Positions 1 through 55,080 of a DNA stretch of 64,000 nt are shown here, one piece after another. The notes below the pieces were generated by a model. It was given only the letters and a program-made list of their open reading frames with translations, made no database searches and was not told the origin of the DNA. The stretch comes from Neoechinorhynchus agilis (lineage: Eukaryota; Animalia; Acanthocephala): the NCBI GenBank assembly GCA_051530055.1, contig CM121343.1, positions 1,830,389 to 1,894,388 on the forward strand, given 5' to 3'. Each line of letters opens with the position of its first letter. Positions within the stretch are counted from its first letter, which is position 1. Both the position numbers and the translations under genes were made by a program.

Positions 1-1138
1 ATAGTGTCCCAATGCACGAAGATATTCCTAATGATGAAGACATACGAAAATCACAGGAAATCCGGTATTATCAATGGGTACCTTTCATTTTAAGTCTGCA
101 AGCATTCTTTTTCTATTTTCCCCGCATCCTTTGGAGAACTGGAAATAGTCGATATGGAATCAATATAGTGTCACTCGTAGATGCAGCCCAAAAATACGAG
201 AAATTCGAAAATTTCGAATTGCGAGACAAGATCATGTTGTTCATGGCAAATTCGATTGAAAGGTACATTCGAATGAAAAACGGCGCATCAACCTATGGAT
301 TTTCGATTTGTAGATAGATGCTCTCATCGCTTCAAAATATGAGAATGTCTTATCCCATAAGGACTTTAGGCGTGCTCGGGCAACTTGTGTGATTGTTCAC
401 TTATATTTACTTGTTAAACTTCTGTGGTTCACTAATCTACTTGTCCAAGTTGCGATTCTAAATGCTCTGTTTGGTAATCCCATTCAACCATACGGTTTTG
501 AATTGATTATGGAATTCTTTAAGCTAAAAAACACTACAGAGTCTCGATATTTCCCAAAGGTTACCTATTGCGATTTTGTGGTTAGAGAAGTTGGATTCGC
601 ACATCATTATACCGTACAATGTGTGCTTAAAATTAACTTGTTCAACGAAGTTATATTTACTTTCTTATGGTTTTGGATGCTAATGATACTAACAATTACA
701 ACGTTTGATCTCTTTAACTGGTTATGCCGGTTAACCTTGCGGAGCGATCTTCGATATATACGAAGTCATCTTTCGGACAGATGCGACGACGAATCCACGA
801 GAAGATTCTCCACTCGCTTTCTGAATAAGGACGTAATATTTTGTCTTCAGCTTTTGGAGGCCAATTCTTGCGATCTAACCGTTACTGAACTAATCAGTGA
901 ACTGTGGAAAAAATATACAGATTCTGCTAACGACGTGCAATCCAATTACAAAATAGCTCCAATCGTATCGTCAGGCGCCTCCAAATACCAATTATCACCG
1001 GATGGTCAAGGTGCGACTGGAAATGGTATCAATAGTAATCACTCCGTTGTCCATCATGGCGACTTTCGCCCTTCTTCAAATGCTTCCATGAAAACTCAAG
1101 ACCGTCAGACCAACCAAAATGCACATTTGCCCGTTTGA
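1..1138 (+). CDS. inx: Innexin (gap-junction protein), 5'-truncated by window edge; exons <1-258 and 318-1138
   Basis: YYQWVP..L.LQA..FY.P...W, LY...K.L...N, FP.VT.CDF and QCVL.IN.FNE.IF.FLWFW innexin motifs in ORFs 12-317 and 389-1138. Confidence 0.95.
259..317 (+). other. Candidate non-canonical hairpin intron in innexin (59 nt)
   Basis: GT at 263 (phase 2) does not match AG at 313 or 317. Cut G|AAAGG..GATAG|AT gives ANSI-D-ALIAS. Imperfect stem TACA-T-TCGAA / TTCGA-TT-TGTA. Confidence 0.55.
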
Positions 1139-1544
1139 TTTTTAAAAATGTGATCAAGCGAAAGCTGCAAATCACACTCTTCATTCAATACCTGATCATA
1201 TTCCTAACTTGTTAAACGACTTGTGCATTCGCATGTAATAACTTGTAGTCTGAGAGTGCTCACAGTCATAATATTTGTCTGTATTAATCAAATAATTAGA
1301 TGGCCAATTTACACGTCCACAAAGCAGCGTATCCAAATCAATCGACACCGTTTGACTTGGATTTACAAGCATTTTGGGTTATACTCAATAATTACTGAAC
1401 ATTAACTCTCTAATTTTCTCTTTTTTGAGCACTAAAATTTTATTCGAGTTTGGCGATGTTTCCCCCCCCCCAGGATTGTTGATCATTTATTTTAAAATAT
1501 TTCGTAAGCTTTTTGCTTAAAGTTTTCTACAATTTAAGCTGGAT

Positions 1545-1620
1545 TTGTTGAAGTACAAAACGTGCAATCACCACCGTCCGCAAAATCTTAGCTTCTCTCC
1601 TTCCTCGGCTTTTGTTGCAT
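1545..1620 (-). mobile_element. 3' end fragment of CRE-like RLE non-LTR retrotransposon
   Basis: Reverse complement matches the 3' end of the 47.4-48.1 kb element and the 63.4 kb copy (cgaggaaggagagaagct...ttttgcggacggtggtgattgcacgttttg). Confidence 0.7.
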
Positions 1621-2602
1621 CGTCTAAACTTATTCCATAGGCTTCATCACTTAAAAAACTGTAATGATATCACAAAAATAAGTAAGTGGGAACATCATCA
1701 ACTTTTGGTTTTTGACGGAATCGGAACAGTGTGATTGAAAAGTCTTTACCAACGTCCTACGTAATGCTTTTAACTTTTAAATAAACCATTTACTTCTAAC
1801 TTCATCATCAAACTTCTAAATTCCGAATAACCAAATTTGCAAGACCTCAAATGAGTTTCCGCTTCTAACTTCTAAAACACAAAAGTGAGAATTTGTAGCC
1901 AGTCTGTTGGCTGCGAACAAAGTTCAAGTTTCCCATTCTTAAAAGCAAGATAGTTTAAACTCGGTTTGGCCATCGGTACTGTTTAGTGAAGTTGATCTTG
2001 TTCCGTGGGTATAAATTACTTGTTTTTTAAAATCTAAAACTTTCTGATCTCAATAAGCATCGATTAATCAATAACGCTCAAGAAATGATTACGTCTTTTT
2101 CGGACGATAAAAAGTCCATGTAACGTTGATGGTAATTGAACTGATCCCAAATTCAAACAAGTTCAAATTTTCCTTCGTTACAATAGAAAGTGCGCTGATT
2201 TTCCAGAGGGTAGAAGGTTATGAAAAATGTCAGACTTAATGGTTCATGCATTGTTGTTCCTCGCAGACTATTTAATTTTCACAAGGTTTACCCGGTCTTC
2301 ACGGTATTCACAGTGTCTGCGGTCAAATTAGTTTGTTTCATGTTCTTGAAAATGCAAGGTCTCTAATTGATAGCTAGCGTTCTGCCCCTCACAAATCACA
2401 TTTTTTCTGCTCCATCTTTCGCTTTAGTATTTTCTTAACGCCATGTACCATAGATCATATAGAACAGTCAGCATTTACTGGACACTTCATTGACAGAAAA
2501 TTATATACAAATATGGAATTCAATCCCGTCCCTAATTATATTTTGCAGCATAAAAGGTCCCTCTGAGTTTCGATCCATTTTTAAGATTAATATTGTCGTC
2601 AA

Positions 2603-5386
2603 ATGAAGTTTGCAGTACATTTAGCTGGGCATCTTACACCGGAATGGCAGTCGCAGTATATTGAATATAGGACAATGAAAAATATGCTTTACGAAATTGA
2701 AAAAAATCGTGAATCACGACGAGTAGATATACTAGATGCCAACGATGAAGCGTTTTTTCAATTATGTGAAATGGAATTGGAGAAAGTCAATGCGTTTTTC
2801 TTTGAGAAGATAACTGAGGCAAAACGCCGGTTCCAAACTCTGAAAAATAGTCTTGAATCTGATTTAAGTAAAAAGCAATTAAATGGTAAGAAGCCTGTTA
2901 CTTATGTGTATTTTTTTAATTTTTAAACCTGCACAAATTGCTGGTTTCAGTTCGCTTTAATGGAAGCAAAAAATTTACGCAGGATTACTCTGCATTTTAT
3001 TAAAAGAAGAATTCATTTTTATAATAGCTTGAGTTGCCCAATTGCCGACGTTTCGGAAATTTATTCTTTCCATCTTCAGGGTAACGTTAACAGTCACACA
3101 ATTTGTCAAACGCGCACGTAGAACCCAGCGTTAAACTAACGCTGACGTAAGCAATCAATTATCACACTAATCGTGGAGTTTGAGAGTATTAAACATCTCA
3201 TTGAATTTGATATTGATAATTGGTTTGTCGTGTTTAATGATTAATGCTTCGGCGGTTCTCAGTCTGTGCCTGTCGGTCTCTTTGATAAGGATCTTGAAAC
3301 ATTTCTCAAATGGCGTTGGGTAGGATCCGTTGTGCGATTCATCCATGTGCTTCCTAATAGCGCTCGCTTTATATGTATGTTGGTTGATTCTGTCACTCAA
3401 CTTGCAAGTTGTGTAGCCAACCTAAGACGCGTTACAGCCGTCTTTATTGCATGTAAATTGGTACACAACGTTACAGGTGTCAAGAACTGCAGTTCTGGTT
3501 AATTCGTGAAATTAGCCGTCTATTAATTCTCGTTAATTGCATGAAAATTAAGCACTGATGTGGAAAAAAATCGTATTTCTCGAAAAAAACTGATATAATT
3601 CCGATTTATAGGAAAAGACTCGAGCAATCGACGACGAATGTTAGAGCTGAAAATATCGCTGAGTGAATTGTATTTATTCTTGATCTTGATTCAAAATTAC
3701 CAAGCTTTAAATCTGATGGGATTTGAAAAAATCATTGAGAAGTATGACAAGCTGTTTTCGACCAATCATGGAATGCAATGGCATCAGCAAAGGATTGGAT
3801 CAACGCATCTTTGGAATAACAAAGAAGTTGATTCAATGATATCGGCGGTAGAGAACTTATTTACGTTGCACCTTACGGGAGGAAACCGACATGAGGCAAT
3901 GAAAAGATTGCGGGTACCTCCGTTGAATGAACATCAGCCATCTTACTCAATATTTATAATTGGACTACTTCTTGGAATGTTATTGATGCTTGTTTCTTTT
4001 TTGGTTTTCACTTGCTATGTACTTGATAATTTTGATGGTCTCCTCTTCCCATGGACACCAGCATTTCGCCTCTACCGATCACTATTTCTTATTTGCATGC
4101 AAGTTATCCTTGTTGGAATAAACATCTATGGCTGGGGCATTGCTGGCATCAATTACGTACTGATATTTGAAATCGATCCTCGAAAACACTTGACTTACCA
4201 ACGGGTTATGCGGATTGGAGTGTTTCTAACATTATGTCTTACACTTAGTATATTTGTATTCCTAATGTGTATTAATTTCGATCTGTATCCATTCATGCAA
4301 CCTTTGAGCCTTTATATGTTTTCGCTTGTTTATGTATTCAATCCTTTGCAAATGTGTAAGTCCCAGTCTAAATGCTCATTCACCAAATCATTAATGAAAC
4401 TCATTACCGCTCCGATGCATTATGTAATGTGGAATACTGTTGGGAGGACTTGTTTATACGTTACAATCTCACTTCTAAACTTAACAGTATGACGCCACAA
4501 AGTATCCTTTGCTGACTTTTGGATCGCGGATCAATTGACGAGTCTTACTCTTATTTTCGCCGATCTCGAATATATCGTCTGCTTTTATGCATACAAATAC
4601 GATTGGCGATCTCACAGTTGGCAAAACGATGTATGCGACACAATCATCATTCTGAACGGAATCCTCGTATCATTTCCTGCATGGTGCCGTTTCTGCCAAT
4701 GTATCAGGCGCTATTGGGATTCTGGTCTGGTATTCCCACACGTCTTCAATGCTCTCAAATACTCGACCACTTTCATCAAAGAAGCTACTTACGTGATTTT
4801 TAGGATCAAACACACGCAGTTCACTGGTCCGTCAACAAATCCATTTTTTTATATTTTTGCAATCGCATTCTTTATAGAACAAACCTCTAAGTGTTATTGG
4901 GATCTCAAAATTGACTGGGGATTTTTCGACAAAAATGCAGGCCGTAATCTCTTCCTTCGTGAGCATATCGTCTATCCACACAAAGCTTACTACTATGCAG
5001 CAATTGTTCAAAACATTGTATTGAGATACGTGTGGCTCATTGGTGTTTATCTATCTGCTAAAGTGAACTTCAAGTACAATGATACTTACACGTTTATAGC
5101 AGCTATTTTTGAGGTCATCCGGAGACACATTTGGAACTATTTTCGTCTAGAGAACGAACATCTTAATAATTGTGGATTATTCAGAGCGGTCCGAGATATA
5201 TCCATCGTACCCATCAGTTTAGAGAAATCCATTAACTTGGAGAAACTGATGGATGATAGTGAAGGAGTCCAAAATCGACCAAGAACTGAAAAATTAGTGG
5301 CCGGTGATACATGTAAAAGCTCACAAGGCAACGGAGTATGTAAGCGGCTACATAAAAAGATTAAGAACATCTCATCTAATATGTAA
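2603..5386 (+). CDS. XPR1: XPR1 phosphate exporter (SPX + EXS); exons 2603-2885, 3612-~4425, ~4504-5386
   Basis: MKFA.HL..HLTPEW..QYI.Y SPX start, LRVPPL, FADFW.ADQL.SL, RR.IWN.FRLENEHLNNCG.FRAVRDISI motifs. Confidence 0.97.
3040..3086 (-). ncRNA. Minimal type I hammerhead ribozyme motif (Penelope-associated)
   Basis: CTGAAGA-T-GGAAA/TTTCC stem II-GAAACGTC (palindromic stem III, GUC site), stem I GGCAAT/GTTACC; lies just 3' of a GIY-YIG remnant. Confidence 0.75.
3090..3510 (-). mobile_element. Penelope-like element remnant (GIY-YIG endonuclease, stop-disrupted) in XPR1 intron 1
   Basis: NVVYQFTC..C.AS*VGYT..L.DRINQH...FKIL.KE....RL..AEAL.I....P.IN. Confidence 0.85.
4426..4503 (+). other. 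Candidate non-canonical hairpin intron in XPR1 (78 nt)
   Basis: Removal restores APMHY-V-SFADFW; in-frame TGA inside; stems TGTGG/CCACA and ATACTGTT/AACAGTAT. Confidence 0.75.
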
Positions 5387-5687: not shown

Positions 5688-5799
5688 AAACGAGCTGATT
5701 TTTGTTTCCATTTTATACGATAACTGCTTCATTTTGCGCATTTTTTAATAATAGAAGAACCATGGAAATGTGGGTCCTCGTGTTCACTCGAATCAAATG

Positions 5800-6980
5800 G
5801 TAGGTGAAATGAACGTGGCTATTGGAATGGGCGACGGTTCTGGTCGGGTGGGTTTGTTGGTGGTTATTGTTTATAGGAGAATTTGTGAGTCATTTCAAGT
5901 TAAGATATCCGAGAAGATTGGGTAGTTTGGCAGAAGGAGCGGAGGTATAGGGAGGTCCGAGGTATTGGAGAATGAAAGGAATTGGGATTGAAAATGGGTT
6001 CAAAGGCGTTGTGATTGTTTGTTGAAAATCTTATAAGGGCATTCGGTGAGAGGAGGAAAATAAATTGTGCAAATTTTAGAGGCGTTTCTATGAAACTTTT
6101 CAAGGCGACGGATTTGTGATTTGGAAAGGATGCAAAAGACGGGATAGCCGTTGGTGGGGAAGGCTAAAATAGAGCTGTAGTAAAATTTGGAGAGATCGGC
6201 CGAAGGGACTCCTAAATGGCGGAAGATTAAGAGGCTGTAAATTTGCGTTTGAGGGTGAATTAAATATGGGAGTCCCATTTCAGATTGTATTGATATTGGC
6301 GACACAGAATCGTTGGATGTCGTTTGGAAAATCGGGATAGGATGTGAGGTTGCGGAAGAGAGAGGTATCATTTCGAGGCATGTGAAGAAATTCAGATGGA
6401 GTTTGTGATTGTTGCAGAAATCTTTTATGTGTGAGAGTTCGTTAGATGTTAAGGAGAGGGAGAGAATGGAGGGTAAAATGAAGCTGTAGTAAAATTTGGA
6501 GAGAGCGGGCGAAGGGACTCCTAAATGGCGGAGGCGTTTGAGTGGGTAGATTATAATGGTATTGTGTTGGAGGGTAAATTTAACATGAGAGTCCCATTTC
6601 AAAATGTATTGATATTGGAGACCGAGGCTCGTTAGATGTCATTTGGAAGATCAGGGTAGGATATTGGGTTGCGGGAGAATGACGGGTTCAACTCGAAGCA
6701 TTTAGAGAAGTTCCGGTGGACATTGACATATAAGAAAAGTTTAGAGTGAGAGAGGTTTGAGGTCGTTTAAGAAAATATAAAAAAGAAGTGGTGACAGGAC
6801 GGTACCTTGAGGTACGCCTTTGGTGAGGGATAGGATGATAGAGGAGGTAGAACGGCAATGAATTTATTGTTGACGATTGCGAAGATAAGATTCCAGCCAG
6901 TGGATCCGCCACAAGTTTAGACCGAAATCGGAACATTCCTGGAAAAGTAGCGTACTTTAGATTTAATACAGACAACTTTT
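5800..6980 (-). mobile_element. Decayed LINE (CR1/L2-like) RT C-terminal fragment with an internal ~320 bp tandem duplication
   Basis: RHLGVPS..LSKFYYS.IL, RLEKFHRNASKIC; 6140-6340 resembles 6460-6660. Confidence 0.7.
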
Positions 6981-8945: not shown

Positions 8946-8955
8946 GTTGATGAAA

Positions 8956-10099: not shown

Positions 10100-11720
10100 T
10101 AATGTTGATTTTGGAGTGGATTACGGGCCCGGCCGAACGGGGGAATGTTGGTGGTTATTGTTTGCAGGAGAATTTGTGAGGTTTGATATTTCCTGAGGTT
10201 CATTTCGGTTTTTACGATATCCGAGAAGATTGGGCTGTATGGAAAAAGGAGCGTAAGGGAGGTACGAGGTTAGAACACGAAATTCGATAGATAATAACAA
10301 GTTTCTTTGTTATTGAACAAAAGAATAGGACCCTTGTGTCTTTGTAAACAGCCGAGTTCTGATTTGTTCATTGAATGCGGTTTATTGATTTTGGAGTGGA
10401 TTACGAGCCCGGCCGAATGGGGGAATGTTGGTGGTTATTGTTTGCAGGAGAATTTGTGAGGTTTGATATTTCCTGAGGTTCGTTTCGGTTTTTATGATAT
10501 CCGAGAAGATTGGGTGGTGATCAAGGGAACATAAAAAAGGGGCGTTTTCATCACTTTTTGAAATTTTTTATAAAGACATTCGGTGAGCAGGAAAAAATCA
10601 AATGTGCCAATTTTCGAGCATCACCCGTTCTGGAAGAATTACGCAGTTTTATGATCAGATCCAATTTTGACAAACTCCATCTCGCCAGAATGTCGATGCC
10701 CGGATGTTTTGGAGGTGCAGCTCAGTTTTTCAATGTCGAAAATGAGAGATACTCCGATTGACCTTATTGCGCTTTGCAAGATTCCAAAGTGTTTAATCAA
10801 ATTGTTGAAACTTAGGTTTTCCAAATGAAGATCCAGAATTTAAATTGTCGAAATATCTTTCCTATTTTTATGCCTTTCGCCCTACGAATTGTGACATTGT
10901 GGGGACTATTCAGACAAGACTCCGGATTTTATGGATTTGCCAACTCGGTTAAGTGATTGACGAGGATTATCCGGTGCTTTGCAAAACTGTAATTACTCGG
11001 CACTTTTGAAGTCAAAATGATTTTCTTAGATCCTATTTGTGCTTTTGACGGTTTTGAAGGGTCAAATTCAAAATACAGTCAAAAAAGTGATTCGTCCTGT
11101 CATCTTCTGGCCAATTACGAAGAGCGCGGAGAATCGTTGTCATGGAAACCAAGATCGCAACGACGAGATCCATGGTTCGATCACGGGCCTGAGCAGTGTT
11201 GGATCGATAGACTACACGCGGATATGGTCCACAATCTTGCAAAATGGATGATGCATGCATTGGACGCCGACCCCGCTTCCATTGGTGATTTACAACGAAA
11301 GGAAGAGAGAGTGCGTTACTGCGGTATTGAACTTTTGAGAAACGCTAGGAGCTTCAAACAACATCCCTCTTCAAATGTGGAACAACGTTTAAGTTAAATC
11401 AACAGTACCATTATTCGCGAATGTTGCTATTCGGTTGGGGTTGTCCGTAGTACTGCACAAAGAATGGTCCTCATAAACACAAGTTCTGATTGGATAAATG
11501 AATCTGGCTATTGATTTTGGAGTGAATTGTGAGTCCGGGCGGGTGGGAATATCCGGTTGAATTGGAAGATCCGTTCTGGTTGGAATTGGTGGTTATTCTT
11601 CGCAGAAGCGCTTGTAAGGTTGGTATTTCCTCAGAATCATTTCGGGTTATGATTTCCGAGAAGATTGGGCAGCGTGAGTTATAGGAGGGTGAAACGGATT
11701 GGGATTACGAGTGTTGTGCT
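10100..11720 (-). mobile_element. Mosaic of decayed LINE fragments (tandem copies at ~10105, ~10385, ~11510)
   Basis: Repeated ttgattttggagtggatt...gttattgtttgcaggagaatttgtgagg segment, also found at 5860 and 21680-21765. Confidence 0.65.
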
Positions 11721-14166: not shown

Positions 14167-16087
14167 CTAATTTTTCTCTAGAATGTTTGAGTGATTATTG
14201 ACATCCACCAATAATAGAACTTGTTTCACCCAGTGGGAAACTTCATTTTGACCCGAAGATGAAGACGAGTATAGAATTGCGAACGGAGATCGCTTTAGAA
14301 GAAAAACAAAGTCTTAAATCAGATAAAGAAAAAGCTCACCAGAAGACTCAAAAGATCCTTTCTCTCGCTTGCTTTACGTTTTAGACTGAAAAAGGGGTAA
14401 GGACGAGGTATTCCATGATGGAGGAAGACGCAAACCAAGTGTCGACAAAATCGCAAAATTCCGTACTGAAGTTTGAGCGAGGTAGTGTTGGAGGTACACC
14501 TTCAAATATATGCGCCAGTAATTCGAATATTGCCATTGGCTTTTGAGATTCAAAGTCTGAGATGGAAATGAGTGACGAATGTTAGTGAATAATTCGTACC
14601 ATCTCTTCGAATGCTAAGAGGTTCCTGACTCATGACATGTTTAATATATGCGTCGGAAGGGTAGGGAATGGGGTAACACCCTAACGCGAGCTCCACGAGT
14701 GACAGCCCCAAACTCCATATATCTGACTGAACAGTATACCGAGATCCATCCAGTCTTTCTGGAGCCATGTAAGATCTTGTTCCAATGAACGTATTAGCCA
14801 TTGAATCAATCAGTTGACCAGACACACCGAAGTCGCAAAGTTTGATCTCTCCTTCACTATTCACCAATATATTTGACGGTTTCACGTCTGCTAAACGATA
14901 TCGGTACTTAAAGGTTCATAAGAAAATCATCTCGCCACACCTCTATGTATGATCCTATGTTTCTCTCGAAGGTAATTCAACCCTTCCAATACCTATGAAC
15001 GTTTCATGAAGAAAAGAGATCTGTGAATGGATTACTTACGGATGCCGTAACATAGCCCAATATATTTTCAGGTAATCTAGGGACCTTCCTAAGCATTATA
15101 TCTAATGATCCACCGTCCTATAGGAAACAATCATCGTCCATTTGAAGTAGTCCACTCACCATATACTCCATGCACATATGAATTTCCCCGTTGTGAGTGA
15201 ATGCACCATACGAACCAACGATGTAAGGTGAGTTATATGGCACTTTTGTTTTTGAAAGAACCCATACAAAAGTATCCGGGAGTACAAAGATGCAGTACTG
15301 ATAGCTCCCGAATAATCTGCTGGCGAATCAAAGGCTTGACTTCCAAATGGATCATCTAATGCACGTAAATAAGAGATAACCGAGGATCGATCACGAACTA
15401 TAAACCAACCAAAAAAAGCCAATCTTATAACTAAGAAGAGAAAGTTTCTTCGTAGGAATAACGACCAAAAAATCATTTGCGGGTGGAGGGGAGGAAATCA
15501 CGCCACAAAAAAAAACTACAGCCGTGATTCGGAAGAAAGTTTGTATTCAGATCTACACTGTCGCAAAATGTCTTACTGTTGTAAATCTAAATTTGCAAGA
15601 ACTGTCGCGAGTATTCACGGGTGCGTCTCAACCCATTTAACTTCCTTCAACTGACCTTTCGAGCCATTATTTGCCCCGTGGCCCTATGGCTCACTTTCCA
15701 AACAATTCCACTGGTCCCGTGACCCAACTCATAAAGATCATTGAGCGAATCAGCACTAAGTTCCCCGATAGCTTCCTTAGACTTGAAAAAATCGTTCATT
15801 CGAGATCTCTGAATATCGGTACAGTTCATGTGACTGAATTGACGTTGTAGCCAATCGATGCTTTTGTTCGTGGACGCAGCCGCGGCGTACAATCCATTCT
15901 GAAGAAGAGATATTTCCTCGCAAATGGGATCCCTAATAACACTCTAGTTTTGGGATTTCACTCGAAAAACGCCTTACGGCTTTCCTTCGTCTAATCGAAT
16001 TCGATTATCGATGACGTCTTTGTTGGCTCCACCATCTTCGGAGCCAGGTAAGATCAATCCCATTACGTTCTTCCTCCTTCTAGACAT
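14167..16087 (-). CDS. MAP2K1: MEK1/2 MAP kinase kinase, about 10 exons
   Basis: Basic N-terminal D-domain [73 protein letters not shown]. Confidence 0.97.
15235..15283 (-). other. Candidate non-canonical hairpin intron in MEK1 (49 nt)
   Basis: Removal gives VLHL-C-NSPY (cf. VLHECNSPY); stem GG(A)TACTTTTGT/ACAAAAGTGCC. Confidence 0.65.
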
Positions 16088-29588: not shown

Positions 29589-31367
29589 TTATCTGTTCAG
29601 TTTCATGTGCGCTTTAACGAGGTCATTGGTGTGCAGGGCAGCCATGAGTGACACTTCAGCGCCCAGTACTACGCTCGCTATGAGCATACTGAGATTTTTG
29701 GCATTTGATCCGATTTCACGTTTGGAAGGCCCATCCAAGCCCATCATACGAAGACAAGCAGCTTGCGGTTTTAGTGAAGTTCCCCCTCCGACGGTTCCAC
29801 ACTCAATCGATGGCATTGTGACGCTGACCCTAACTTTCCCACCTTCCTCGATTTCAAACCATGTCATACAACTGCTGCTGGAAACTACCTGGGCGATGTC
29901 CTGTCCACAGGCAGCGAAAATGGCAGCTACGACGTTAGCAGCATGAGCATTAGAAGTAGAGTGATTTGAGTGGGGAGTAATTAATGTAGAGGGGCGGGAT
30001 GGAACCCACCAATAGAATCACTCTAACGTGAAACAGCTCGCGCCAGCTTGGCTGGCAGCCAGGGCACTTCCCATGAAGTTCTTAATAAGATTCAATTTTA
30101 CAAGATCCGTAGGTTCGACCTTCAGACGTGATCTAACGGCACTGGCATCTATAACAGCTTCAGCGATCACGGACTTTCCTCGTCCATCGATCCAGTTTGA
30201 ACTGGACGCTTTCTTATCCACGCAGTAATTACCACTCAAAGAGACCAACTGAAGATCAGGAAATTGGTTTTGTAGGCATTCGATACATTTCTCGCATCCT
30301 TTTGATACCATATTCATCCCCATGGCATCACCTGTGCTTGCCATAAATTTCGCAAATATATAGCAGCCGGCACTTAGAGTAACTCTGGTGGCTAACAAAC
30401 GGGCATATCTACTAGTAGACGTGAAAGCTTTTTCGAGGGCACATCGTCCTTCCTTAGACTCAATCCATTGTTTAACTTTGGTTGCTTCAGCTAAGCAACT
30501 TGCTTTTAAGACTGGACCTCGACTCATAAAATCGGAAACAACAGTGCATTGAATGCCATTCGGAGTTTCGCTGAGAACCTTGCATCCTCGTGAAGCACTA
30601 GCAATCAAGGCTCCTTCGGTTGTTGCTAGAGGTACATACCAAAGTTTATTGTTCATTTTTATTGGTCCCACGAATCCAACGGGTACTTGAATAAAACCCA
30701 GTGTATTCTCACAGCATTTCCCTTCAATACTTCTAAAGTCGTATGATTCATGGGGTATTCCCTCGACATCCACACCCAATGACTTCAAATAAGCTCTACG
30801 AAGGCAGACACGATCCTTAGCTTCTAATAACAAACCTTCAGCAACTCTAAGACTAAGGTTTCCATCAGTAGTTACTTTTTGAAGGACACTTTTCACATCC
30901 ATACTTATATCCGTAGTTGCATCAAAATCAATCTGTGGCACGTCCATTATAAAATCGGCATAATCATCACCGACACCCTCAATCGTCCCGCTCTGCTCCC
31001 TTTGATCGTAAGTGCTAAGTTCAACCATTACGTCATATAAAGTCAGGCATATTATCACCCATAAAATTAAACGAATCCGGAACTTCAAACTCAGAAACGT
31101 TCTATCAAAAAGTTTACCACCCTTTAGGGCGTCACTAATTTCGGTCATGGGGGAATCCGACGATGTTTCTGCGTCATCATGATCGCTGCGATCTCCATCA
31201 TTATCGAAAATCGCCGTCACCAATAAAGTCTGATTCCTTAATTCAGTCACAAAACCATTCCATTTGTCCAATGAATTAAGGGCCAAGAGGCTAAGGAGGG
31301 CTACCATTACAATCCACACCAATCGCATATTCCGACGGAAATATAGCTTGCTCATTTTACTTGCCAT
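29589..31367 (-). CDS. HMGCR: HMG-CoA reductase (class I catalytic domain, short 2-TM N-terminus); exons 31367-30030 and 29951-29589
   Basis: CEN.LG, LATTEGALIAS, TGDAMGMNMVSKG, SGNYCVDKK, NAHAAN, GQD.AQ, GTVGGGT, H(MKLNR). Confidence 0.97.
29952..30029 (-). other. Non-canonical hairpin intron in HMGCR (78 nt); no usable AG acceptor
   Basis: In-frame TGA inside; first downstream AG falls after NAHAANVV; perfect 10 bp inverted repeat TAGAGTGATT/AATCACTCTA. Confidence 0.85.
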
Positions 31368-39330: not shown

Positions 39331-39869
39331 TAATGAGCTTTTTTAAATTTTAGCAGCTTGATCCTACACACACACGAGGAGATTCACACAATCGAAGAGC
39401 GAGCGCAGGTTTGAGATCGAGTCATGACTTCGTTTCTTCCGTTTCGAATTTTAGGACCGACGTCAGCAGTCCTGTTCTTATTAATGGGTTGCCGATTATC
39501 GGATTTGTGCCACTGCGATGATTTCCTATGGGAATTCCGTGCGGCTTAGTTCGTTCATCTATCTCACCAATTCATTATCCTCCGAATATCGTTTGTTGAG
39601 AATTAGCATTTGAACCTCTTTAAATCAGTTGTGCCCAACCTATGGCTCACGGGAAGGAGCTCGCACTTTTATTTCTATATTCACAAACGTATTTGGTGAT
39701 TTTAAAGGAGAGTCATGACTGCACGGTAATTAAGAAGTTGCTCATTGATATATTTTTTGTTTGCTGATGAGATATAGAGATTAATAGATCCTGGCTTACT
39801 TTTTATATATAAAGAAGTCTGAATCAATAAATTAATCTCTATATCACCAAACAAAAAATATGTACGGTA

Positions 39870-40085
39870 TTTTTGACTTGTGGTGAACATAATCAGCCGG
39901 TTAAAAATCATTTTATTGTTCGCGAAATATTTCGAAAGAAAAAACCTCGCCTTATCAATCATTGCTTGTCATTTAGAACTTACCAGCAATGATTGAGATG
40001 AGGCGAGGTTTCCGCTTTCGAAATATTTCGAGAAAACAATAAAATGATTTTTAACCGGGTGATTATCTTCACCACAAGTCAAAAA
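39870..40085. mobile_element. MITE-like palindrome, ~100 bp imperfect arms
   Basis: 39870-39967 is the reverse complement of 39986-40085. Confidence 0.8.
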
Positions 40086-40779
40086 TGATCATCCCGACGG
40101 ATTTTCACGATATGATTTACGATAATACTGGAATGACTTTCAATTGGAGACGAAACGCGATGGCACCCGAGGGTTGCCTCTGACGCTCCCTGTGCATTTC
40201 AAGAAATTTACGCTTCCAAGCTCTTGCCACTCGATTTGAGTAATTTGAGCTATCTGTGGAAAATGCCAAGAGGAAAGGAAACGAGAGGTTGACACGGAGT
40301 ACTGAAATTTTCACGAGAAGTGGACGAATTTGTATTTTTTCGTACAATAAGACAAGAAACCACTGTGCCCCTCTTCTGCACGAAGAGAGGTGCAGTATTC
40401 AAGGAGCACAATACTAAAAGACACTTTGAAACAAAAACACAAAACGAAGTACTGTCAGTTTGACGGTTTCCTTGGAGAAGAGAGGATCGCCTTGATGGTT
40501 TAACAAAATTGTTCAATAAAAGAAGAAAACGAAACAGCATTTCGTGTGAATTTTCAAGTAGTTCACATATTGAAAACGCCAATTATTGCCTTTTCAATTC
40601 TCAGAAATCACGTGATATACTACTTGATTTTTGAGCCGCATGATTAAGTTTTTTTTGAAAACGGACACTTGAGTGGGGTAAAGATCGGTTTGTCCAAGAG
40701 AAAAACTACTTGATTCGCAAGCCGCACGATTGATCAAGTTTTTTCGAAAACGGGCACTTATGCGGGGATGTTGTAATGG

Positions 40780-40925
40780 TAAAAAATCTTTATTTCCGAG
40801 CTATCGATGTCTTACGGCTTCTTCAAGAATTGTTGAAGTGATTTATTCGCAACTTCAACAATTCCTGAAGATGGCGTAAGACGGCGAAAGCTCGGAAATT
40901 AAGATTTTTCTTTATCATTGCAACA
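40780..40925. ncRNA. Inverted pair of degenerate hammerhead-like Penelope ends forming a long hairpin
   Basis: CTGAAGA-TGGCGTAAGACGGC-GAAAGCTC on +; TTGAAGA-AGCCGTAAGACATC-GATAGCTC on -. Confidence 0.6.
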
Positions 40926-42250: not shown

Positions 42251-43011
42251 TGCTGATGTTGTTACCGGTTTTGATTTTAGTTCAGCGAGGGGCTGACAAT
42301 GCAGAGCAAACCAAAGAATACTATCGTTTGACAGTTGAAGACCACATTGGTTACGCATTTTGTTGGCCTGCCCAAAGAATATTCTTAAATAGGAGGTTCA
42401 TTTGGCTTTATTCTAGAACCTCACGTTCGCTTCCCATTTGCTGACAAATGTAAGCGGGGGCTTTGTCTGGCACCCTGATCTTGATTCATTTGCATTCTGC
42501 AACAAGCTAAAGAGTTTTCGAATTGTAAGCTGATAAAAGGAAAAATGCGACTAAAACCTAAATATTTTTTATGCCCTTAGAACAGTAGATCTTGAAAAAC
42601 TAATATGCAAACCTTTTTAATGTGTATCCTCAAAAATCTGACGTGCACTCGTGGGCAAATCTTGAGAGCAATGGTAGAATTGTTTTGATACGGGGAAAAG
42701 TTAAAAGAATATACTGATTCCAATATTTCGGCACAATATTCCTAAATGCCTAATCCATTTGTCCGTGAGTGGAACAAGCATTCTATAGTTGTTCCGTCCA
42801 CTGTATTGTCCCTCATCCAATATTATAACATCCTCGATTCCATAAAAAAGCGGCAATATGTGTATTATTTTATCCACATTACAGTTCGTCCACTGGTAGG
42901 ACCCTTGATATGTCATTCGCTGCATCTATGCTGAAATTAACTCTTGCCTCAGTTATATCAAAATGTCGATATGTGAGCCATCGGGGTATATGATTAGCAT
43001 TATTTTTTATT

Positions 43012-43085
43012 AAAAACGTTTCGAACCTCATAGGGTTCGTCATCAGTTCCAGTATCCCGATGAGGTTCGAAACGTCTTTAATAAA
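43012..43085. ncRNA. Hammerhead motif on - strand plus truncated inverted copy on +
   Basis: CTGATGA-CGAACC-CTATGA-GGTTC-GAAACGTT; partial gatgaggttcgaaacgtc on +. Confidence 0.65.
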
Positions 43086-43389
43086 AAAAATTAAAACAAT
43101 AATCTTTCTCAGTTATTAAGCAAATTATATTGCTAGTGTTAAAAGAATTTCGCTTGCTATCATAGTACCTGAAATCAAAGGATTAATCTTATAAAAATAA
43201 TATAAATGTATTGCTTTACCTATTCTAAGATCCAACTTATCACAAACAGTAGCTGTTATTATCGAGAAAAGAGTGACATTTTATTCGGTCAGCGCAGTAT
43301 CTTTGACAATTTCATTTAGATTTATTAATTCATACCATCAATTTCCTTTTTTCTACTTGTTAAATTGCGTATCCGCAAAGGATTAGCAG

Positions 43390-44890: not shown

Positions 44891-45708
44891 TCACGTGGAA
44901 TCCTTGCATCGATGTAGTACTATTGAGGGCATTTCATCAGAACATGAGACGAAAACTTGTTCTTGAGAAGGACGGTCACGCTCTTGTTGAACTTTAAGCA
45001 ATGCATCGAACAGTTCATTGTGATTCACTATTGATTTGGACGAGTGTGTTTCTTCAGATTTTGACTGGTATGGAATAGGTTCGATTTGCTGTTCCCAACC
45101 TGGTGGAGGACTCGAGGGCGGTGAGATCAAGAACTGCTTCACTGGTATTGGTGGTTCAAGATATCTAGGACCGTTCGATGAACTGTGTGCATTACTGGCT
45201 GCATAGTAGCAGTGGCACTCGTATCGTTTATCACCGCCATCCACGGTATCGATTCTTGACGTCGTGTAACCAATCCACTCGAGAATCGATACTTTAGCAA
45301 ATGGAATGTTCTGTATCTGGCACATGCAACTCTTGCATCCTGAAGTGAATCATAGGATATGCGACATCTTCTAAAGGAACGGAAATAAATAAAAGATGGT
45401 TTCCGCGACTCATCCAGGAGAAACAGGTTCTCTAATTGCATCTTTAGGTTCGTTGAGTCAAAAAGAGACGCCGGTAAGTCCGTCAATATGCATGCGAATG
45501 GCTTCGTAGACGGTGGATTTCTTATTGATGGATACTCTAACATGTCATCTCTTAGTGATAAATTCAAATTCTTAAGTTTCTCTTCCCACTCCTCTTCTTC
45601 GATTTGATTTGGAATCACATAGTCATGGAAATTAACAATGGTTCCATCGTTGCTTATAGGCGATTCTGAAAGTTCATCCAATTTGTCCTCATTGTTATTG
45701 ATCGACAT
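44891..45708 (-). CDS. RCAN: RCAN/calcipressin (calcineurin regulator), 2 exons
   Basis: F.YFRSFRR.RI.Y, KQFLISPP.SPP.GW motif, C-terminal PSIVLH (PxIxIT-like). Confidence 0.93.
45241..45293 (-). other. Candidate hairpin intron in RCAN (53 nt)
   Basis: Frame switch bracketed by perfect 11 bp inverted repeat GTATCGATTCT/AGAATCGATAC; a 38 nt GT-AG alternative exists. Confidence 0.55.
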
Positions 45709-45890
45709 CGTTATATTTTTATCTACAACAAATCTATGTAATCTAGGAACTCTCACGCTTGATAACAGACACCATGGAAGCTTCTCTGAAAATCGATTTC
45801 ACTGACAACAATCCAACGTAATCTTTAAAGAATCAGAATTAAGACCGTGAAAAGCGTCAATTGGATTAGAAGACAAATAATAAAAATACG

Positions 45891-46099
45891 TGTAAGATTA
45901 TTCTTTTTTTTCACCATACACGGCTCAAAAGAATAATCTTACACACACATCTATCAAAAGGCTTAAATAATAAAGACATTTTTCCTTTTTTGGTCTTCGG
46001 TGAGCTGTCACCACGAAGAGGGAACTCAGGTTCCGAAATATTTAATTCAATAGTTAATGTTTAATTCTCGGGGTGGTGACAGCTCACCGAAGACCAAAA
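45891..46099. mobile_element. Two adjacent short palindromic elements (17 bp arms 45891-45943; 26 bp arms 45988-46099)
   Basis: TGTAAGATTATTCTTTT/AAAAGAATAATCTTACA; TTTTGGTCTTCGGTGAGCTGTCACCA and its reverse complement. Confidence 0.85.
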
Positions 46100-49285: not shown

Positions 49286-51067
49286 TCAGATAGAAGTAGC
49301 ATACGAAGCTGGATAAAGACCTTCTTTACTTCCATGTCTTCCTTTGCACCACCCTTGTTCGTCTCTCTCTTCAATCATATAAAATTGCATCCCTAGTTTA
49401 GCGCCATGATACACAAACAAGAATCAAAGGGTTCCTCAATTACCTGCTCTAAGTGATAATTCGTCCGATTCCTGTGCCACATAATCGTAAATGGCTCTTA
49501 CTGGAACGCCGTCAGGCGGTATTTCATCTCTAAAAGGGTTATTAGCATCGGGGTAAAGTGTTGAAGTCATCAATGGCATAGTTGATGAATTGTAATCCGC
49601 CAATGATATTTGATCCATGATGCGGGTAAAACCGATCCGCGCAGGGCCCGGATGAGGTGGAGCTGGGTTGGTTTTACGGCAAATTGGTACCAAGTTATTG
49701 GGATTCTCCACAAATTCTATAAACTGCGGCTTTTGCATCGGCATCTTCGCCCCATAAGTACGAGCCCACCAATCAATATCTGCTTCGGCATCTGCACCAT
49801 CAATACAAATGCTTAGTTCGTCATAAATCGCGGCAAGCCTATGAACGGAGGTGGATATAAATGAAAACAAGCAAGTACTGCGCAATGTAACAAAATGAAA
49901 TTCAGTCCCGGCTAAGAAAGTTGAGCCGTTCAAACCCCGAGAAGCACAGATATCTACAAACCCGCGCTCCTGAGCCTAAGGTAACCCATAAAATAACCAA
50001 TTTTTGTAGATATCTGAAGAGGTGGATTTTGTCAATGAAATATTAAATAACATCAAAACAGTTTTCGTGGTTTGAACGGCTCAACAAGAATATCTTTCCA
50101 CTCGAATGTGATCCTGCATGAAATATATAAAATGCTTACTCTGCGGATTTTGATATATCAAGACTGGTATGCGTCCCTTTAAAAACTTCCTTGAAAAATC
50201 TCAAACGCTCTCGTTCAAAGGTTTGTGTTTTTTCAAAGACCTATAAAACGGATGTAATATCAGAATGCAAAATTTAAGATTTACCGTACTCATTTGCTCG
50301 ATGTACAATGGCATTAAATGTTCGAGTTCTTCTATGGAACTTCTATACTTTTGTTCACAGCTTGACTTTTCCTTAACGGACCTTTCCAATCGTTCCAATA
50401 TCTTTCGCCTGGCATCCAAATTTGACTGTTGCGTTCCCGAAGACGACTGTATTTGACGATCGATGGCATCCTTTTGATTTTCTGCGGTCTTCATTGCCTT
50501 GCATGCGCTATAGTAATCCTTCTTACACTTCATCATTCGCGTGTAAATCTTCGCCCAGGATTTTTGGGCCTTTTTGAATTCATCATCGTATTCCCTTACA
50601 GTACGATTACTAATCATTCCACGATTGTAGTTATTCTTTTGCCACGCCTTGACGTGTTCCACAACTTCCCGTAACCTATCGGCGATCGTCGCATGAATTT
50701 CCGCAGTTCGGTCGGTCTCTGAGAGAAATGCTGTCCATGCGTTCAATGTACTCCCGCACTCAGCACCGCGTTCAAGTTGAAGAATTTCGGCCCATCGGCG
50801 GGAACAAGATCGAAGTTGCCTAGCAAACGACTTCTCACAATCAGATCTGTCTTGAAGGAAACTGGTTAAATCAGAACAACGCCTGTAACCATCATCAATC
50901 CTCTTAACGGCAAATCTGTATCGATTGATCTCCCAAAAATTCGGAACTTCTTGGGCTGCGCCAGATAATTTCGCTGTGGAATTATTTTGACAATTTTCAT
51001 CATCGACGTTGTTTATATTGCTGCTACCGCCGCCGCCGGCGGCTTCATCGCGATTATCTTTAGTCAT
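49286..51067 (-). CDS. PACSIN: PACSIN/syndapin (F-BAR + NPF + SH3), 4 exons, GT-AG
   Basis: FWE...Y...VKRIDDG.R.C.DL, D..WW...YG..MPM..PQF.E, NPF, VRA.YDY..QE.DELS..AG, DEQGWCKG...GLYPA.Y. Confidence 0.96.
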
Positions 51068-51589: not shown

Positions 51590-51773
51590 ATTATAAGCGA
51601 CGTGAGTCCTTGACAGTTCAAAAGGTTCGTCGGTGTGGGATATACTAGTCTACGGGGAAAATCATAAACAATTGATCTTCGTTGGTTTCATTGTGCAGGA
51701 AATGTATACCACTAGTTGTTTGAAGGGATTGAACTGTTCATAAAGTGGTCGTTTTATGGCGCGTATAAAAATT

Positions 51774-52153
51774 AAAATCCGATTGGTTTCGGAGCCACAC
51801 GATCTTGTACGCCTTTTTGGTCATTTAAGGGATGGATCAATATGCACTGTCCTAAGATTGCATATTGATCAAAAGGCGTACAAGATTGTGTGGCTCCGAA
51901 ACCAATCAGATTTTAAAATCCAAAAAATCAATTTAATTTCACTAGCACGTGGAAGTGGGGGAAAATTATACATCAAAGACTGACTTTAATTGAAATATTT
52001 CGTCCAATCACATTGGACTTCTTTAGTCAATTATAGCTTGTAAGTAGTTGAAAAAACACTTCAACAATAATTGGCTAAAGAAGTCCAATGTGATTGGACG
52101 AAATATTTCAATTAAAGTCAGTCTTTGATATATAATTTTCCCCACTTCCACAT
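51774..52153. mobile_element. Two adjacent MITE-like palindromes (44 bp arms 51774-51914; ~80 bp arms 51947-52153)
   Basis: Direct inspection of reverse-complement arms; a solo arm of the first also occurs at ~26990-27025. Confidence 0.85.
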
Positions 52154-52679
52154 ACTCATGGATTTTATCTTTAATTTCACTAACGATATTTTCGACCATG
52201 ATCAGTTTAGGGCAATTCCGGTTCTTTCGAATATTCAAAATTATATGGTGGTTATCAGTAGAAAAGTCGATTTTTATAGAAATTAGTCCTCAACTTGAAA
52301 ATCGCTCACCTTTTCGGCCAACATGACTTCTTCCTAAAGACATCTTACAAGTGAAGAATAAAGCCCCTCTCAGCTTGAAGATGCTCTTCATCGGTGACAG
52401 ATAGTGAATTTGATGAGCGAATATCCGCAAAAGATAGCCCGGAAGAATGTTACAGTTGCTGAGTCGGGTACAATGCCGGAATGAAAACAAGCGCGATTCT
52501 AGGATGTTCATCACGATAGGAAAGTCTAAGAGTTGGTTTTACAGGGTGAATATTGCCGAACAGATCCTAACGACTAATTTCTGATTCGATTTTTCACTGA
52601 TATAGCCAAAGAATTCCGGCGGTGAGCCTTTTTGCCGGGAATCCACTATAATGATCAAAATCCTGATTTGTAGTGAGCT

Positions 52680-53354
52680 ATGGCCTCATTTAAGATAATG
52701 TCCCGAAGAGACAACAACAATGAAGAGGATGATATCTCAAGACGTTGTTCTTGTAGACTACGAGATGCTAGGAGACTGAGTCTTGAGCATCGTGAAGACA
52801 TTTTACGCCGAACGGAGGAGTATCACCAACGAGCAGCAGTTCGATCAATGGCAAATAACATGAACACTCGACGTCTCCGGTCTGACTCATCACGTCAACA
52901 TTACCCAGGAATCCAGATTATTCGTGAGGCTCGTCCACGTTTAGGGATCGAGCTAGCCGCCCCGTTTTTGACTATTCATGAGAGCGAAGAAAGCACTTCG
53001 GAGGAAGCTTTTAGTGAAGAGCCAGGACCGGAAGTTGTCAGCGAGGAGCCGGAAGTTGTAATTATAAGCGACAGACTTACGTCTACGAGGTCAAATGAAC
53101 CGGAAGTTATCGCTTTAACTGATATCAATTATGAGAAAACTACGCTTGGTTCCGGTCTCTGCCCGATTTGCTTGGATCATCTTTCAGCAATCAGAATACG
53201 TGGCGAAACTCTTATGTCCACGCTTTGTGGTCATGTGTATTGCAAATCGTGTATTGACAATTATTTCCATGATAAATCTGATAGGAAAAGGCATCCTTGT
53301 CCCAAATGCCGTAATGGTATCAAAAAGCAGGATGTGCATCCACTATACTTCTGA
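52680..53354 (+). CDS. RNF4: RNF4-like SUMO-targeted RING ubiquitin ligase, single exon
   Basis: SIM-like PEVVIISD and PEVIALTD; C-terminal CPIC...ST.CGHV.C..CI......CP.C.......HPLY. Confidence 0.85.
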   Translation: MASFKIMSRRDNNNEEDDISRRCSCRLRDARRLSLEHREDILRRTEEYHQRAAVRSMANNMNTRRLRSDSSRQHYPGIQIIREARPRLGIELAAPFLTIHESEESTSEEAFSEEPGPEVVSEEPEVVIISDRLTSTRSNEPEVIALTDINYEKTTLGSGLCPICLDHLSAIRIRGETLMSTLCGHVYCKSCIDNYFHDKSDRKRHPCPKCRNGIKKQDVHPLYF

Positions 53355-54229
53355 AATCTCGAATAAGAATTTATTTGTCAATTTACTATGCTAATGATGA
53401 GTGTAAAAGGTGTTTGATTAACAGCTTTAGTTGGTACGTTGCGATCTATGATTCATATTCGAGCAACCTAGCAAATCGCGTACAAAAATAAAATAGCGAA
53501 CTTTTATCGTGTCCGGGATTGGCCCTTGGGATTTGTGGTCCACAATTAGGCTTCAGGATTCTGTATGGAAACAATAAAAACAGCAGTCGTGGCATTTCAT
53601 ACATCGAAACACGCTGGATATATGCAAAAGTGCATTTAGTGGATTCTTAAAAACCTTTAAGTCTTTGGCTTAGAAGAATGATATGGCAATGGTATTGAGC
53701 TTTCATTAGTCGTGGTGACTCATTCAAGGATGATTTTAAATGGAACTTCTTACTTTTTACACGCAAAAGCCATCTAACTATTCATCTTCAATAAAGTCTT
53801 CGTATTTCTAGGCCTTTCGAGGTTTAGATTTTATTGAGTTCATGGTGGTTAGATATGTTATTATATGGGTCAGTCATCCACACTCGAGGGGGATCGTTAA
53901 ATTCGAATATACTGAGCTCAAATGACTGATTCAATCATTCGAAATAAATTCGGATTTAACGATCTCGCTCGGGTGTCGAGGACCGACCAAAATATTGACA
54001 AAAGTAAATGTATACACACGATTTTAAGGATGTGATTTCAGGAGTTGCCTAGGGCGTTCCATTAGCAACGAAACTTGAAAATAACTAGAGCAAGCCGGCT
54101 AAAAATTATCAAAGATTTAGTAATGCGCTTCGTTTTCGGTAAAAATTATTTAATTTGTCGAATGTGTGCCTTGTAAATCGTTTTTTGTAAATTTCACCTT
54201 TATATAAATACGGCTAAAATCACTGTCAG

Positions 54230-55080
54230 AATGTTAAGTGCGATTGTTTTTTGCCTAAATCTGAGAAAGTTTCAGGATTTTGTGCCTGACAATTATCCTG
54301 AAGGGGGAATAGCTGATGAAATGATCATTAGCTTGTATTAGATCGCTCTTACAGAAAAATGACTTCTTTTAGACCTAGAAAGTGAAGCTGAGAAATACAA
54401 ATGTGTCCCATATTTCGATCCTTTCAAATATGCGACCATGGACCTTAATAGCGATAAGAATTATCAATCTTTTCGATGTGCTCCAAGCAAAGTCATGCAA
54501 TCAACCGCTCACCTTTATATCAGAGCGGAACTTAAATCTTTCAATCAGACAACCAAGCAGAGTTCTAAAATTGCTTTAAATGACCGAGGATACATTGACA
54601 ATTATTACTGATGCTTTTGAGAATTATGCGATAGATCTTCAATAAAAGCAGATCGATGACAATCGAGATAGCAAAATTTCCATTAAAGAACTTGGAGGGT
54701 ATTTTCAAAGTGACAATAGGAAATGGTTGTATCCCTTGATTGATATCGTTGTGTTCCCCTTGCCACAACGCGAAGAGATGAATTCCACGGACTTTTTTTA
54801 TTATTCATTAAGAAAGATTATTCTTGGAAGTCTTGTGGCTAAATGTATGATGCGATGCACCTCCGGTTAGATAAAAAATGGAACGTCTCCAGCTCTTCCC
54901 CAAATTCGTCGCAGGAGAATGGTTGGCGCAGGCATCCGACCGTGAGAAACCCGATATCTGTATCTGGAAAATCGTAGAGATAAACTCAAAGACCATCCAT
55001 CTAGAGGAAAAAGGCAAAAGTCGAAGAAATAAAAGTTCAATTGCGTCTGAGCAGTTAGACGCGGATAAAAGTTTGGTCCT
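54230..55080 (+). CDS. Orphan multi-exon gene with an EF-hand-like motif (DDNRDSKISIKEL)
   Basis: Open frames 54373-54610 and 54648-54870 joined across a hairpin; structure only partly resolved. Confidence 0.4.

Follow-up and report, generated by a model that had tools for sequence, protein, structure and literature searches.

Hairpin-bounded interruptions lacking GT-AG ends in conserved genes of the acanthocephalan Neoechinorhynchus agilis: candidate nonconventional introns in an animal

Introduction

Can an animal gene carry introns whose ends are set by a helix and not by terminal dinucleotides? The question is raised by a 64-kb stretch of the genome of the acanthocephalan Neoechinorhynchus agilis (CM121343.1:1,830,389-1,894,388, assembly GCA_051530055.1), which we call the window and to which coordinates refer unless another locus is named. 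An earlier note on this DNA described eight interruptions, in the genes for innexin, XPR1, MEK1, dynamin, glutamate synthase (GOGAT), HMG-CoA reductase (HMGCR) and RCAN and in an orphan reading frame, and proposed that they form a minority intron class defined by structure. All eight interruptions exist where they were placed, and the removal of each joins two long open frames. The proposed class was partly confirmed: five interruptions are solid, RCAN is a probable sixth, the orphan is doubtful with an insignificant stem, and innexin was wrong, being a canonical intron. A stem-bounded, non-GT-AG class that recurs beside ordinary GT/GC-AG introns is supported in five conserved genes, with a shared geometry at the 3′ end, and plausible in RCAN. 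We consider it rather probable that these elements are hairpin-type nonconventional introns in an animal variant, removed from RNA by a helix-guided, non-GT-AG route.

In the literature examined, hairpin-defined non-GT-AG introns have so far been reported only from protists (euglenids, diplonemids and Amoebophrya), and no report of hairpin-type introns in animals turned up. Full-text literature searches found no papers linking acanthocephalans or rotifers with non-canonical or nonconventional introns. The word "intron" is absent from the main text of the N. agilis genome paper (PMC12690905).

Materials and methods

The assembly is a hybrid of Oxford Nanopore (ONT) and Illumina reads with very little HiFi, built from the DNA of about 50 pooled whole worms and of single females (PMC12690905). 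The annotation was produced by BRAKER2 with hints from mRNA-seq of 74 worms (74 libraries) (PMC12690905). Around each site, every frame-preserving canonical alternative was listed, and the products were scored against Pfam. Stem strength was measured as the energy of the best duplex between the first 25 and the last 25 nt of an element, with the 30 verified canonical introns of the window and random window segments as controls. In a second test, whole-element folds were compared with dinucleotide shuffles and expressed as z-scores. Most of the verified canonical introns were fixed by homology or by the agreement of independent runs. The gene finder that we built on a periodic Markov model and dynamic programming was unreliable because the coding signal is weak, and its introns were accepted only where two runs or homology agreed.

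Results

Non-canonical cuts restore five conserved proteins

In XPR1, MEK1, dynamin, GOGAT and HMGCR, the conserved protein is restored colinearly and without insertion or deletion only by a non-canonical cut. The Pfam gain over the best canonical alternative is 6-21 bits across the five genes. The claim that a non-GT-AG junction best restores the conserved protein therefore holds for these five, whereas the scores do not separate the cuts of RCAN and favor the canonical cut in innexin (290.2 versus 283.9 bits).

The XPR1 element (4426-4503, + strand, 78 nt) has the 5′ spacer AAT and the 3′ spacer AAAGT, after which the exon resumes with A. GTGG (4429-4432) and ATACTGTT (4434-4441) pair with AACAGTAT (4483-4490) and CCAC (4495-4498). 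The joined product, APMHY/VSFADFW (a slash marks the junction), is colinear with the conserved motif, and its EXS domain scores 265.6 bits against 255.6 for the 51-nt GT-AG alternative at 4452-4502 (+10.0). The BRAKER gene (3638-4492) ends at a stop inside the element, leaving the C-terminal 290 aa unannotated. The N-terminal SPX part of XPR1 (2352-3638, + strand) is annotated as a separate gene of 102 aa. More unmodelled introns may sit between 2926 and 3638.

The MEK1 element (15235-15283, − strand, 49 nt) has the 5′ spacer ACTCCC and the 3′ spacer ATAT, or ATATA in an equivalent placement of the cut, and the exon again resumes with A. Its stem consists of GG-A-TACTTTTGT (~15266-15277) paired with ACAAAAGT-G-CC (~15239-15249). 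With the hairpin cut, the Pkinase domain scores 192.3 bits versus 186.6 for a 43-nt GT-AG alternative (+5.7), and the product VLHLC/NSPYIVG is colinear with the conserved motif. BRAKER models MEK1 as two genes of 131 aa and 242 aa, split around the element.

The dynamin element (18196-18444, + strand, 249 nt) lies between the spacers AACTC and CGTAT, with a TA repeat at both junctions. ATGCAGTCATCA (18201-18212) pairs with TGATGAATGCAT (18428-18439) at 11/12 positions. The joined product runs from EEV/ colinearly into the conserved stretch, and its PH domain scores 43.2 bits against 34.5 for the deposited BRAKER model and 35.3 for another alternative (+8-9). The deposited model uses a 150-nt canonical intron, leaving a 33-residue insert and a D to N replacement in the conserved DSWKASF helix. 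We also observed pairing between GTGTGATGA, at the end of exon 2, and TCATCACAC, at the beginning of the element (18175-18215), in competition with the 5′ arm of the terminal stem.

The GOGAT element (21034-22264, − strand, 1231 nt) has the spacers AAGGTG and ACGAG, and its stem is formed by ATGGCTGCTGA (22248-22258) and TCAGCAGCCAT (21039-21049). The GXGXG domain scores 237.8 bits with the hairpin cut versus 225.6 with a GT-AG alternative (+12.2), and the product AGMAGGVI/YVL is colinear with the conserved motif. BRAKER splits the gene at the element into 22263-27845 (1465 aa) and 19141-21085 (616 aa). The break falls inside the GXGXG domain, and the start ATG of the second gene lies within the element. 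This element contains a nested genomic repeat: its interior (21656-21776) shares a repeat of 40-110 nt, at 76-93% identity, with intergenic DNA at 10103-10463 and 5848-5889. Reading frames inside the element gave no Pfam match.

The HMGCR element (29952-30029, − strand, 78 nt) has the spacers ACGT and CTTCT, and the exon resumes with A. TAGAGTGATT (30016-30025) pairs with AATCACTCTA (29957-29966). The HMG-CoA_red domain scores 394.3 bits with the hairpin cut against 373.6 with the canonical one (+20.7), and the joined product SCF/NAHAAN is colinear with the conserved motif. The annotated protein (P0216, 429 aa) stops inside the element. A 113-aa gene annotated at 29605-29946 (+ strand), antisense to the unannotated C-terminal HMGCR exon, is probably spurious.

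The elements share their 3′ geometry

A helix of 7-12 bp formed from the element ends brings the junctions together. Dynamin, GOGAT, HMGCR and RCAN, like the orphan and innexin cuts, have a tail of 5 nt between stem and 3′ junction. For MEK1 the tail measures 4 nt, or 5 nt in the equivalent placement, and for XPR1 it measures 5 nt in the centroid fold or 8 nt in the minimum free energy (MFE) fold. The earlier geometry of the 3′ side, 5 nt and then A, was borne out. With placement ambiguity allowed, a common 3′ spacer value across five elements has a chance of ~9e-4.

The first exon base downstream of an element is always A. Each of the eight sites has a junction repeat of 1-3 nt that includes A (GA, GTA, TA, TA, A, A, A, A), and because of this A the element and the following exon can both be written as A-starting, as had been claimed. 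In dynamin, MEK1 and GOGAT, conserved residues on both sides confine the cut to the junction repeat. TA lies inside the junction repeat in only 3/7 elements, and the upstream junction reads T/A in 5/8 cases.

The 5′ spacers measure 3 nt (XPR1), 6 nt (MEK1), 5 nt (dynamin), 6 nt (GOGAT), 4 nt (HMGCR) and 1 nt (RCAN). None of these six elements has CAG or CTG at the base of its stem. The five solid cuts run from A to T or from A to G, and none is GT-AG, GC-AG or AT-AC. The 5′ ends of the six elements are AATGTG, ACTCCC, AACTCA, AAGGTG, ACGTTA and AGTATC, and the 3′ ends are GT, AT, AT, AG, CT and GG. Pyrimidines make up 0.35-0.7 of the last 20 nt in the elements versus 0.55 in canonical introns. 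In equivalent cut placements (4424-4426 and 45292-45293), the XPR1 element starts with GTAATG and the RCAN element with GTATCG; these 5′ ends look canonical, yet they are paired with non-AG 3′ ends. The earlier observation of little shared sequence was borne out, as no element resembles another or anything else in the 64 kb except for the repeat nested in the GOGAT element.

Terminal stems exceed those of ordinary introns

The terminal duplex energies are −18.1 (XPR1), −12.2 (MEK1), −13.6 (dynamin), −25.2 (GOGAT), −20.9 (HMGCR) and −19.4 kcal/mol (RCAN). The 30 canonical introns of the window have a mean of −4.2 and a minimum of −9.9 kcal/mol, and random window segments have a mean of −6.5 and a 5% quantile of −12.3 kcal/mol. 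Terminal pairing is far stronger in the elements than in the 30 canonical introns (Mann-Whitney p = 3e-5), and 6/8 interruptions lie at or below the 5% quantile of the random segments (binomial 5e-7). The whole-fold z-scores are −3.69 for HMGCR, −2.63 for MEK1, −2.26 for RCAN and −1.66 for XPR1, versus −0.77 to +1.66 for the six canonical introns tested. On duplex energies and shuffle z-scores, six stems are real, and those of the orphan and innexin cuts are indistinguishable from chance. Inverted repeats had been reported at the ends of all eight interruptions, and the comparison of stem energy with controls, which the earlier note had called for and which we ran within the window, upheld six of them.

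The verified canonical introns number 30 (29 GT-AG and one GC-AG), with a median of 47 nt; all are ordinary in their ends, although the earlier count of about 45-50 was not reached. Against these, the class comprises about 5-7 elements. All nine homology-defined junctions of CaMKII are GT-AG or GC-AG, and a candidate hairpin element in this gene was resolved as two canonical introns. The earlier impression that canonical introns have no comparable stem held for all 30, but not for a probable intron in an F-BAR/SH3 gene (49912-50206, − strand). In our model of this gene, two GT-AG introns of 66 nt (50141-50206) and 174 nt (49912-50085) enclose a mini-exon of 55 nt, and the ends of the 174-nt intron form a perfect 17-bp stem followed by TTTCTTAG. 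The model is self-consistent, and homology cannot verify it.

RCAN, the orphan frame and innexin

The RCAN element (45241-45293, − strand, 53 nt) is a probable member. It has the 5′ spacer A, the 3′ spacer CGTGG and an 11-bp terminal stem between GTATCGATTCT (45282-45292) and AGAATCGATAC (45246-45256), and the exon resumes with A. The Calcipressin domain scores 74.7 bits with the hairpin cut versus 73.9 and 74.8 with two GT-AG alternatives, so homology cannot fix the junction.

The interruption of the orphan frame (54607-54655, + strand, 49 nt) is of doubtful membership. Its 7-bp stem, TGCTTTT paired with AAAAGCA, has 5-nt spacers on both sides. The terminal duplex (−8.6 kcal/mol) and the whole-fold z (−0.16) are within chance, and the product has no Pfam match.

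Innexin was rejected as a hairpin case. The earlier cut at 259-317 is replaced by a canonical intron at 263-369 (+ strand, 107 nt; AG/GTACAT...CTTTAG/G), which raises the score to 290.2 bits and gives a product of 422 aa, equal to the annotated length. The terminal duplex of the 259-317 cut (−7.2 kcal/mol) and its whole-fold z (+0.33) are within chance. Canonical alternatives had been conceded in five cases and described as less homologous. We found formal ones at every site, and they score lower in the five solid genes but not in innexin.

Palindromes outside the exons

Many unique near-perfect palindromes of 55-230 nt, with arms of up to 77 nt and 97% complementarity, occur in the window outside coding exons (39750-40086, 40782-40909, 43003-43088, 45890-46099, 51772-52165, 53870-53986 and 56695-57037). 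They have no sequence in common. The window contains 107 perfect stems of 9 bp or more within 300 nt, versus about 71 in shuffled sequence. The palindromes may be the raw material of hairpin elements, or they may be hairpin RNA genes. Rfam gave no match to a known RNA family anywhere in the window. Because background pairs dominate, de novo searches for cuts that are bounded by a stem and join open frames were not enriched at any tail length. They brought up no convincing new member.

Annotation and relatives

The BRAKER annotation bridged XPR1, MEK1, GOGAT and HMGCR with no canonical intron and truncated or split all four. Since BRAKER keeps only canonical intron hints and failed to bridge these expressed housekeeping genes, reads across canonical junctions are argued to be absent at the four genes. 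The failure does not tell non-canonical removal from retention. The assembly is a consensus from about 50 pooled worms and single females, so the inserts are in most DNA molecules, and this makes rare insertion alleles unlikely.

The spliced dynamin from the window is 96% identical to the N. agilis protein ACOME3_008931 and 70% identical to the dynamin of Pomphorhynchus laevis. Protein searches found only one dynamin and one HMGCR of N. agilis. About 16 introns interrupt the dynamin locus of P. laevis (L001), and the short ones inspected are GT-AG. P. laevis has no intron at EEA/DSWKASF, where its protein (P0002) runs on uninterrupted, which places the insertion of the dynamin hairpin element on the N. 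agilis side. At TDGR/NIYKEH, the canonical intron of N. agilis coincides with a break in the P. laevis match, which suggests an intron common to both species. A partial HMGCR of a close relative (P0217, UniParc UPI00079F019E, 73% identical) reads QAGASC-NAHAAN uninterrupted through the junction. As a side observation, the deposited P. laevis dynamin omits 19 residues (CVELVSLELMNIIQKVTAR; L001 20023-20328), probably owing to a spurious intron call, as these residues are conserved in N. agilis and belong to a continuous open frame. For the RING-finger gene in the right half of the window, no record was found.

Discussion

Alternatives to a helix-guided removal

The first alternative is that the ordinary spliceosome removes the elements wholly or partly at nearby GT/GC-AG sites, that the proteins are altered, and that the hairpins are incidental remains of inserted DNA. 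Frame-preserving GT-AG options do exist, with lengths of, for example, 43 nt (MEK1), 51 nt (XPR1), 38 or 53 nt (RCAN) and 150 nt (dynamin). Innexin proved to be exactly such a case, and the probable F-BAR intron shows that a GT-AG intron may have a 17-bp terminal stem. However, the products of this route score 6-21 bits lower, and residues that are conserved would be lost or exchanged (DSWK of dynamin, NAHAAN of HMGCR, GG..Y of GOGAT and C-N of MEK1). BRAKER, with its 74 RNA-seq libraries, left XPR1, MEK1, GOGAT and HMGCR broken and did not use these sites. We consider this explanation unlikely.

Second, the elements may not be removed at all, being disrupted alleles, pseudogenes or assembly artefacts whose frames have not yet decayed. 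Annotation and sequence by themselves do not distinguish retention from a non-canonical removal, the ONT/Illumina assembly contains very little HiFi, and this genome produces many young palindromes. Nevertheless, five or more genes within 30 kb, essential and apparently single-copy, would then be null, and long conserved open frames are kept in both flanking halves. The elements do not come from one recent burst of insertions, because they share no sequence, and the fact that only their ends still pair suggests age. Assemblers are not known to create inserts of 49-78 nt that have a defined geometry. Retention is in our judgment quite unlikely.

Third, the segments could be excised precisely from the DNA of somatic or expressing nuclei, like the internal eliminated sequences (IESs) of ciliates, and the assembly would show the germline form. 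The inserts lie within genes, are short and unique, and have inverted ends together with a short repeat at the junctions, where TA (3/7) or T/A (5/8) recurs. Palindromes between short repeats tend to be deleted precisely at the DNA level. Against this, the whole-worm consensus assembly retains all the elements, which is a weak argument, and there is neither a fixed TA boundary nor an end consensus of the ciliate kind. We know of no precise intragenic DNA excision in animals. Such an excision is very unlikely, and we give even less credence to its specific form, ciliate-style eliminated sequences inside animal coding genes with the hairpin ends as the guide.

A hop of the ribosome over the inserts, as in the programmed bypassing of phage T4 gene 60 or the byp elements in the mitochondria of a yeast, has a negligible probability: four inserts of 49-78 nt with a hairpin and in-frame stops superficially resemble bypass gaps, but bypassing needs identical take-off and landing codons flanking the gap, the junction repeats are 1-3 nt and not codon-aligned, and to our knowledge no hop approaches the 249-nt and 1231-nt members and no cytosolic example exists in animals.

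Several other intron or cleavage types were set aside. U12-type introns were rejected, as the 5′ ends are unlike [AG]TATCCTT and the termini are neither AT-AC nor GT-AG. As U2-type GT/GC-AG introns, the elements fail in the five genes, where canonical cuts do not give the best conserved product; innexin fits this type. No bulge-helix-bulge motif of the tRNA type and no IRE1 site was seen by eye, and no formal search was made. Cuts of the RNase III type were rejected as the junctions lie outside the helix, and trans-splicing of separate halves was rejected as the domains are split mid-fold.

A possible mechanism and the points against it

We infer from the intact frames on both sides, from the essential single-copy genes and from an annotation that lacks a canonical bridge that the elements are likely removed at the RNA level. 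In such hairpin-type introns, the cuts would be positioned by the helix and not by the terminal dinucleotides, as is the case for euglenid nonconventional introns. The catalyst could be a spliceosome able to use sites that a helix presents to it, or a separate activity of the endonuclease-ligase or circularising kind. The elements would be a minority class of lineage-specific inserts in coding exons, and they probably originated as insertions of palindromic or foldback sequence, which is plentiful in this genome.

Several points weigh against this interpretation. Two of the eight cases originally proposed fail. Formal GT-AG alternatives are present at every site, and the annotators used one of them for dynamin. 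The 5-nt tail of XPR1 hinges on the choice between two near-equal foldings. The 5′ spacer varies from 1 to 6 nt, and there is no shared motif that might fix the 5′ cut. The genome is generally palindrome-rich, and one probable GT-AG intron, that of F-BAR/SH3, is also bounded by a terminal stem. Protein searches returned no transcript-derived N. agilis protein among their matches, and a chimeric protein query of all eight junctions for N. agilis transcripts was swamped by dynamins and gave nothing new. The survey covers a single window of 64 kb and, in a relative, a single orthologous locus.

Comparison with known systems

The closest precedents with respect to geometry, Euglena and Amoebophrya, had not been named in the earlier note. 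Nonconventional introns are known from euglenids and diplonemids (PMC12501133, PMC6221363). In Euglena, knock-in mutagenesis established the code 5′-N3-CDG ... CH'G-N5-6 / R(exon), in which the 5′ spacer is strictly 3 nt, the 3′ spacer tolerates 5-6 nt and the exon begins with a purine; the removal machinery is unknown (PMC12501133). The N. agilis elements resemble these introns in their variable non-GT-AG borders, in ends that pair and join the junctions, in the coexistence with GT-AG introns and in a suspected origin from inverted-repeat insertions. The 3′ geometry of a stem, N5-6 and then a purine is also similar (here about 5 nt, then A). The probable F-BAR/SH3 intron, GT-AG with a terminal hairpin, resembles the "intermediate" introns of Euglena. 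However, the N. agilis elements have no CAG/CTG core, a 5′ spacer of 1-6 nt, longer stems (7-12 bp) and an animal host. They are a minority of introns, whereas nonconventional introns make up ~72% in E. agilis. Circle release and the cis code were demonstrated experimentally in Euglena, while the N. agilis elements are described from the DNA sequence.

The introner elements of Amoebophrya have inverted repeats of 8-20 nt near their ends and direct repeats of 3-5 nt across their boundaries (PMC7789003). Common to both systems are a hairpin formed from inverted repeats, short direct repeats at the boundaries, the lack of a conserved dinucleotide and the failure of ordinary annotation pipelines. 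The inverted repeats of N. agilis, at 7-12 bp, agree with this pattern, and the direct repeats are shorter, at 1-3 nt. Amoebophrya has many elements in repeated families, whereas no two are alike in the N. agilis window. The position of the splice site relative to the hairpin is reported to vary in Amoebophrya, while the 3′ spacing looks fixed in N. agilis.

Among animals, the tunicate Fritillaria is also a lineage with non-GT-AG introns, and it has many of them. These have preferred 3′ AT/AC ends, mostly a polypyrimidine tract and a modified U2-type spliceosome, and no hairpin definition is described for them in the same paper (PMC13326754). The N. agilis elements do not have such preferred 3′ ends with a pyrimidine tract.

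Ciliate IESs, too, are short and unique inserts within genes, their ends are weakly inverted, both junctions carry a short repeat, and their exact removal restores the gene. They are, however, removed from DNA, are TA-bounded in Paramecium and have a terminal consensus, whereas pairing is subterminal in N. agilis and whole-worm DNA keeps the elements. MITEs (miniature transposable elements that bear inverted repeats) and introners also insert into exons as inverted repeats and become introns, and their gain is lineage-specific, as at the dynamin site that is empty in P. laevis. They differ in having terminal repeats that begin right at the end, a fixed target-site duplication, many copies and canonical splice sites, while the N. 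agilis elements are non-canonical and have no copies within 64 kb. Pairing in N. agilis starts 1-6 nt inside the ends, and the junction repeats (1, 1, 1, 2, 2 and 3 nt) are not fixed.

Implications

In the public annotation of N. agilis, XPR1 and HMGCR are truncated at the elements, MEK1 and GOGAT are split, and dynamin has gained 33 residues. If 5-7 elements per 64 kb occurred genome-wide, the very low BUSCO completeness (47%) may be partly an annotation artefact. Low BUSCO completeness has served as an argument for massive gene loss in acanthocephalans. If the density holds, the proteomes used in searches for drug targets would also be incomplete. If the helix-guided removal is true, an animal would use the same 3′ geometry as the protist introns, meaning either that such a solution had more than one origin or that the machinery behind it is widely shared, and N. 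agilis would offer a second system in which to look for the removal enzyme.

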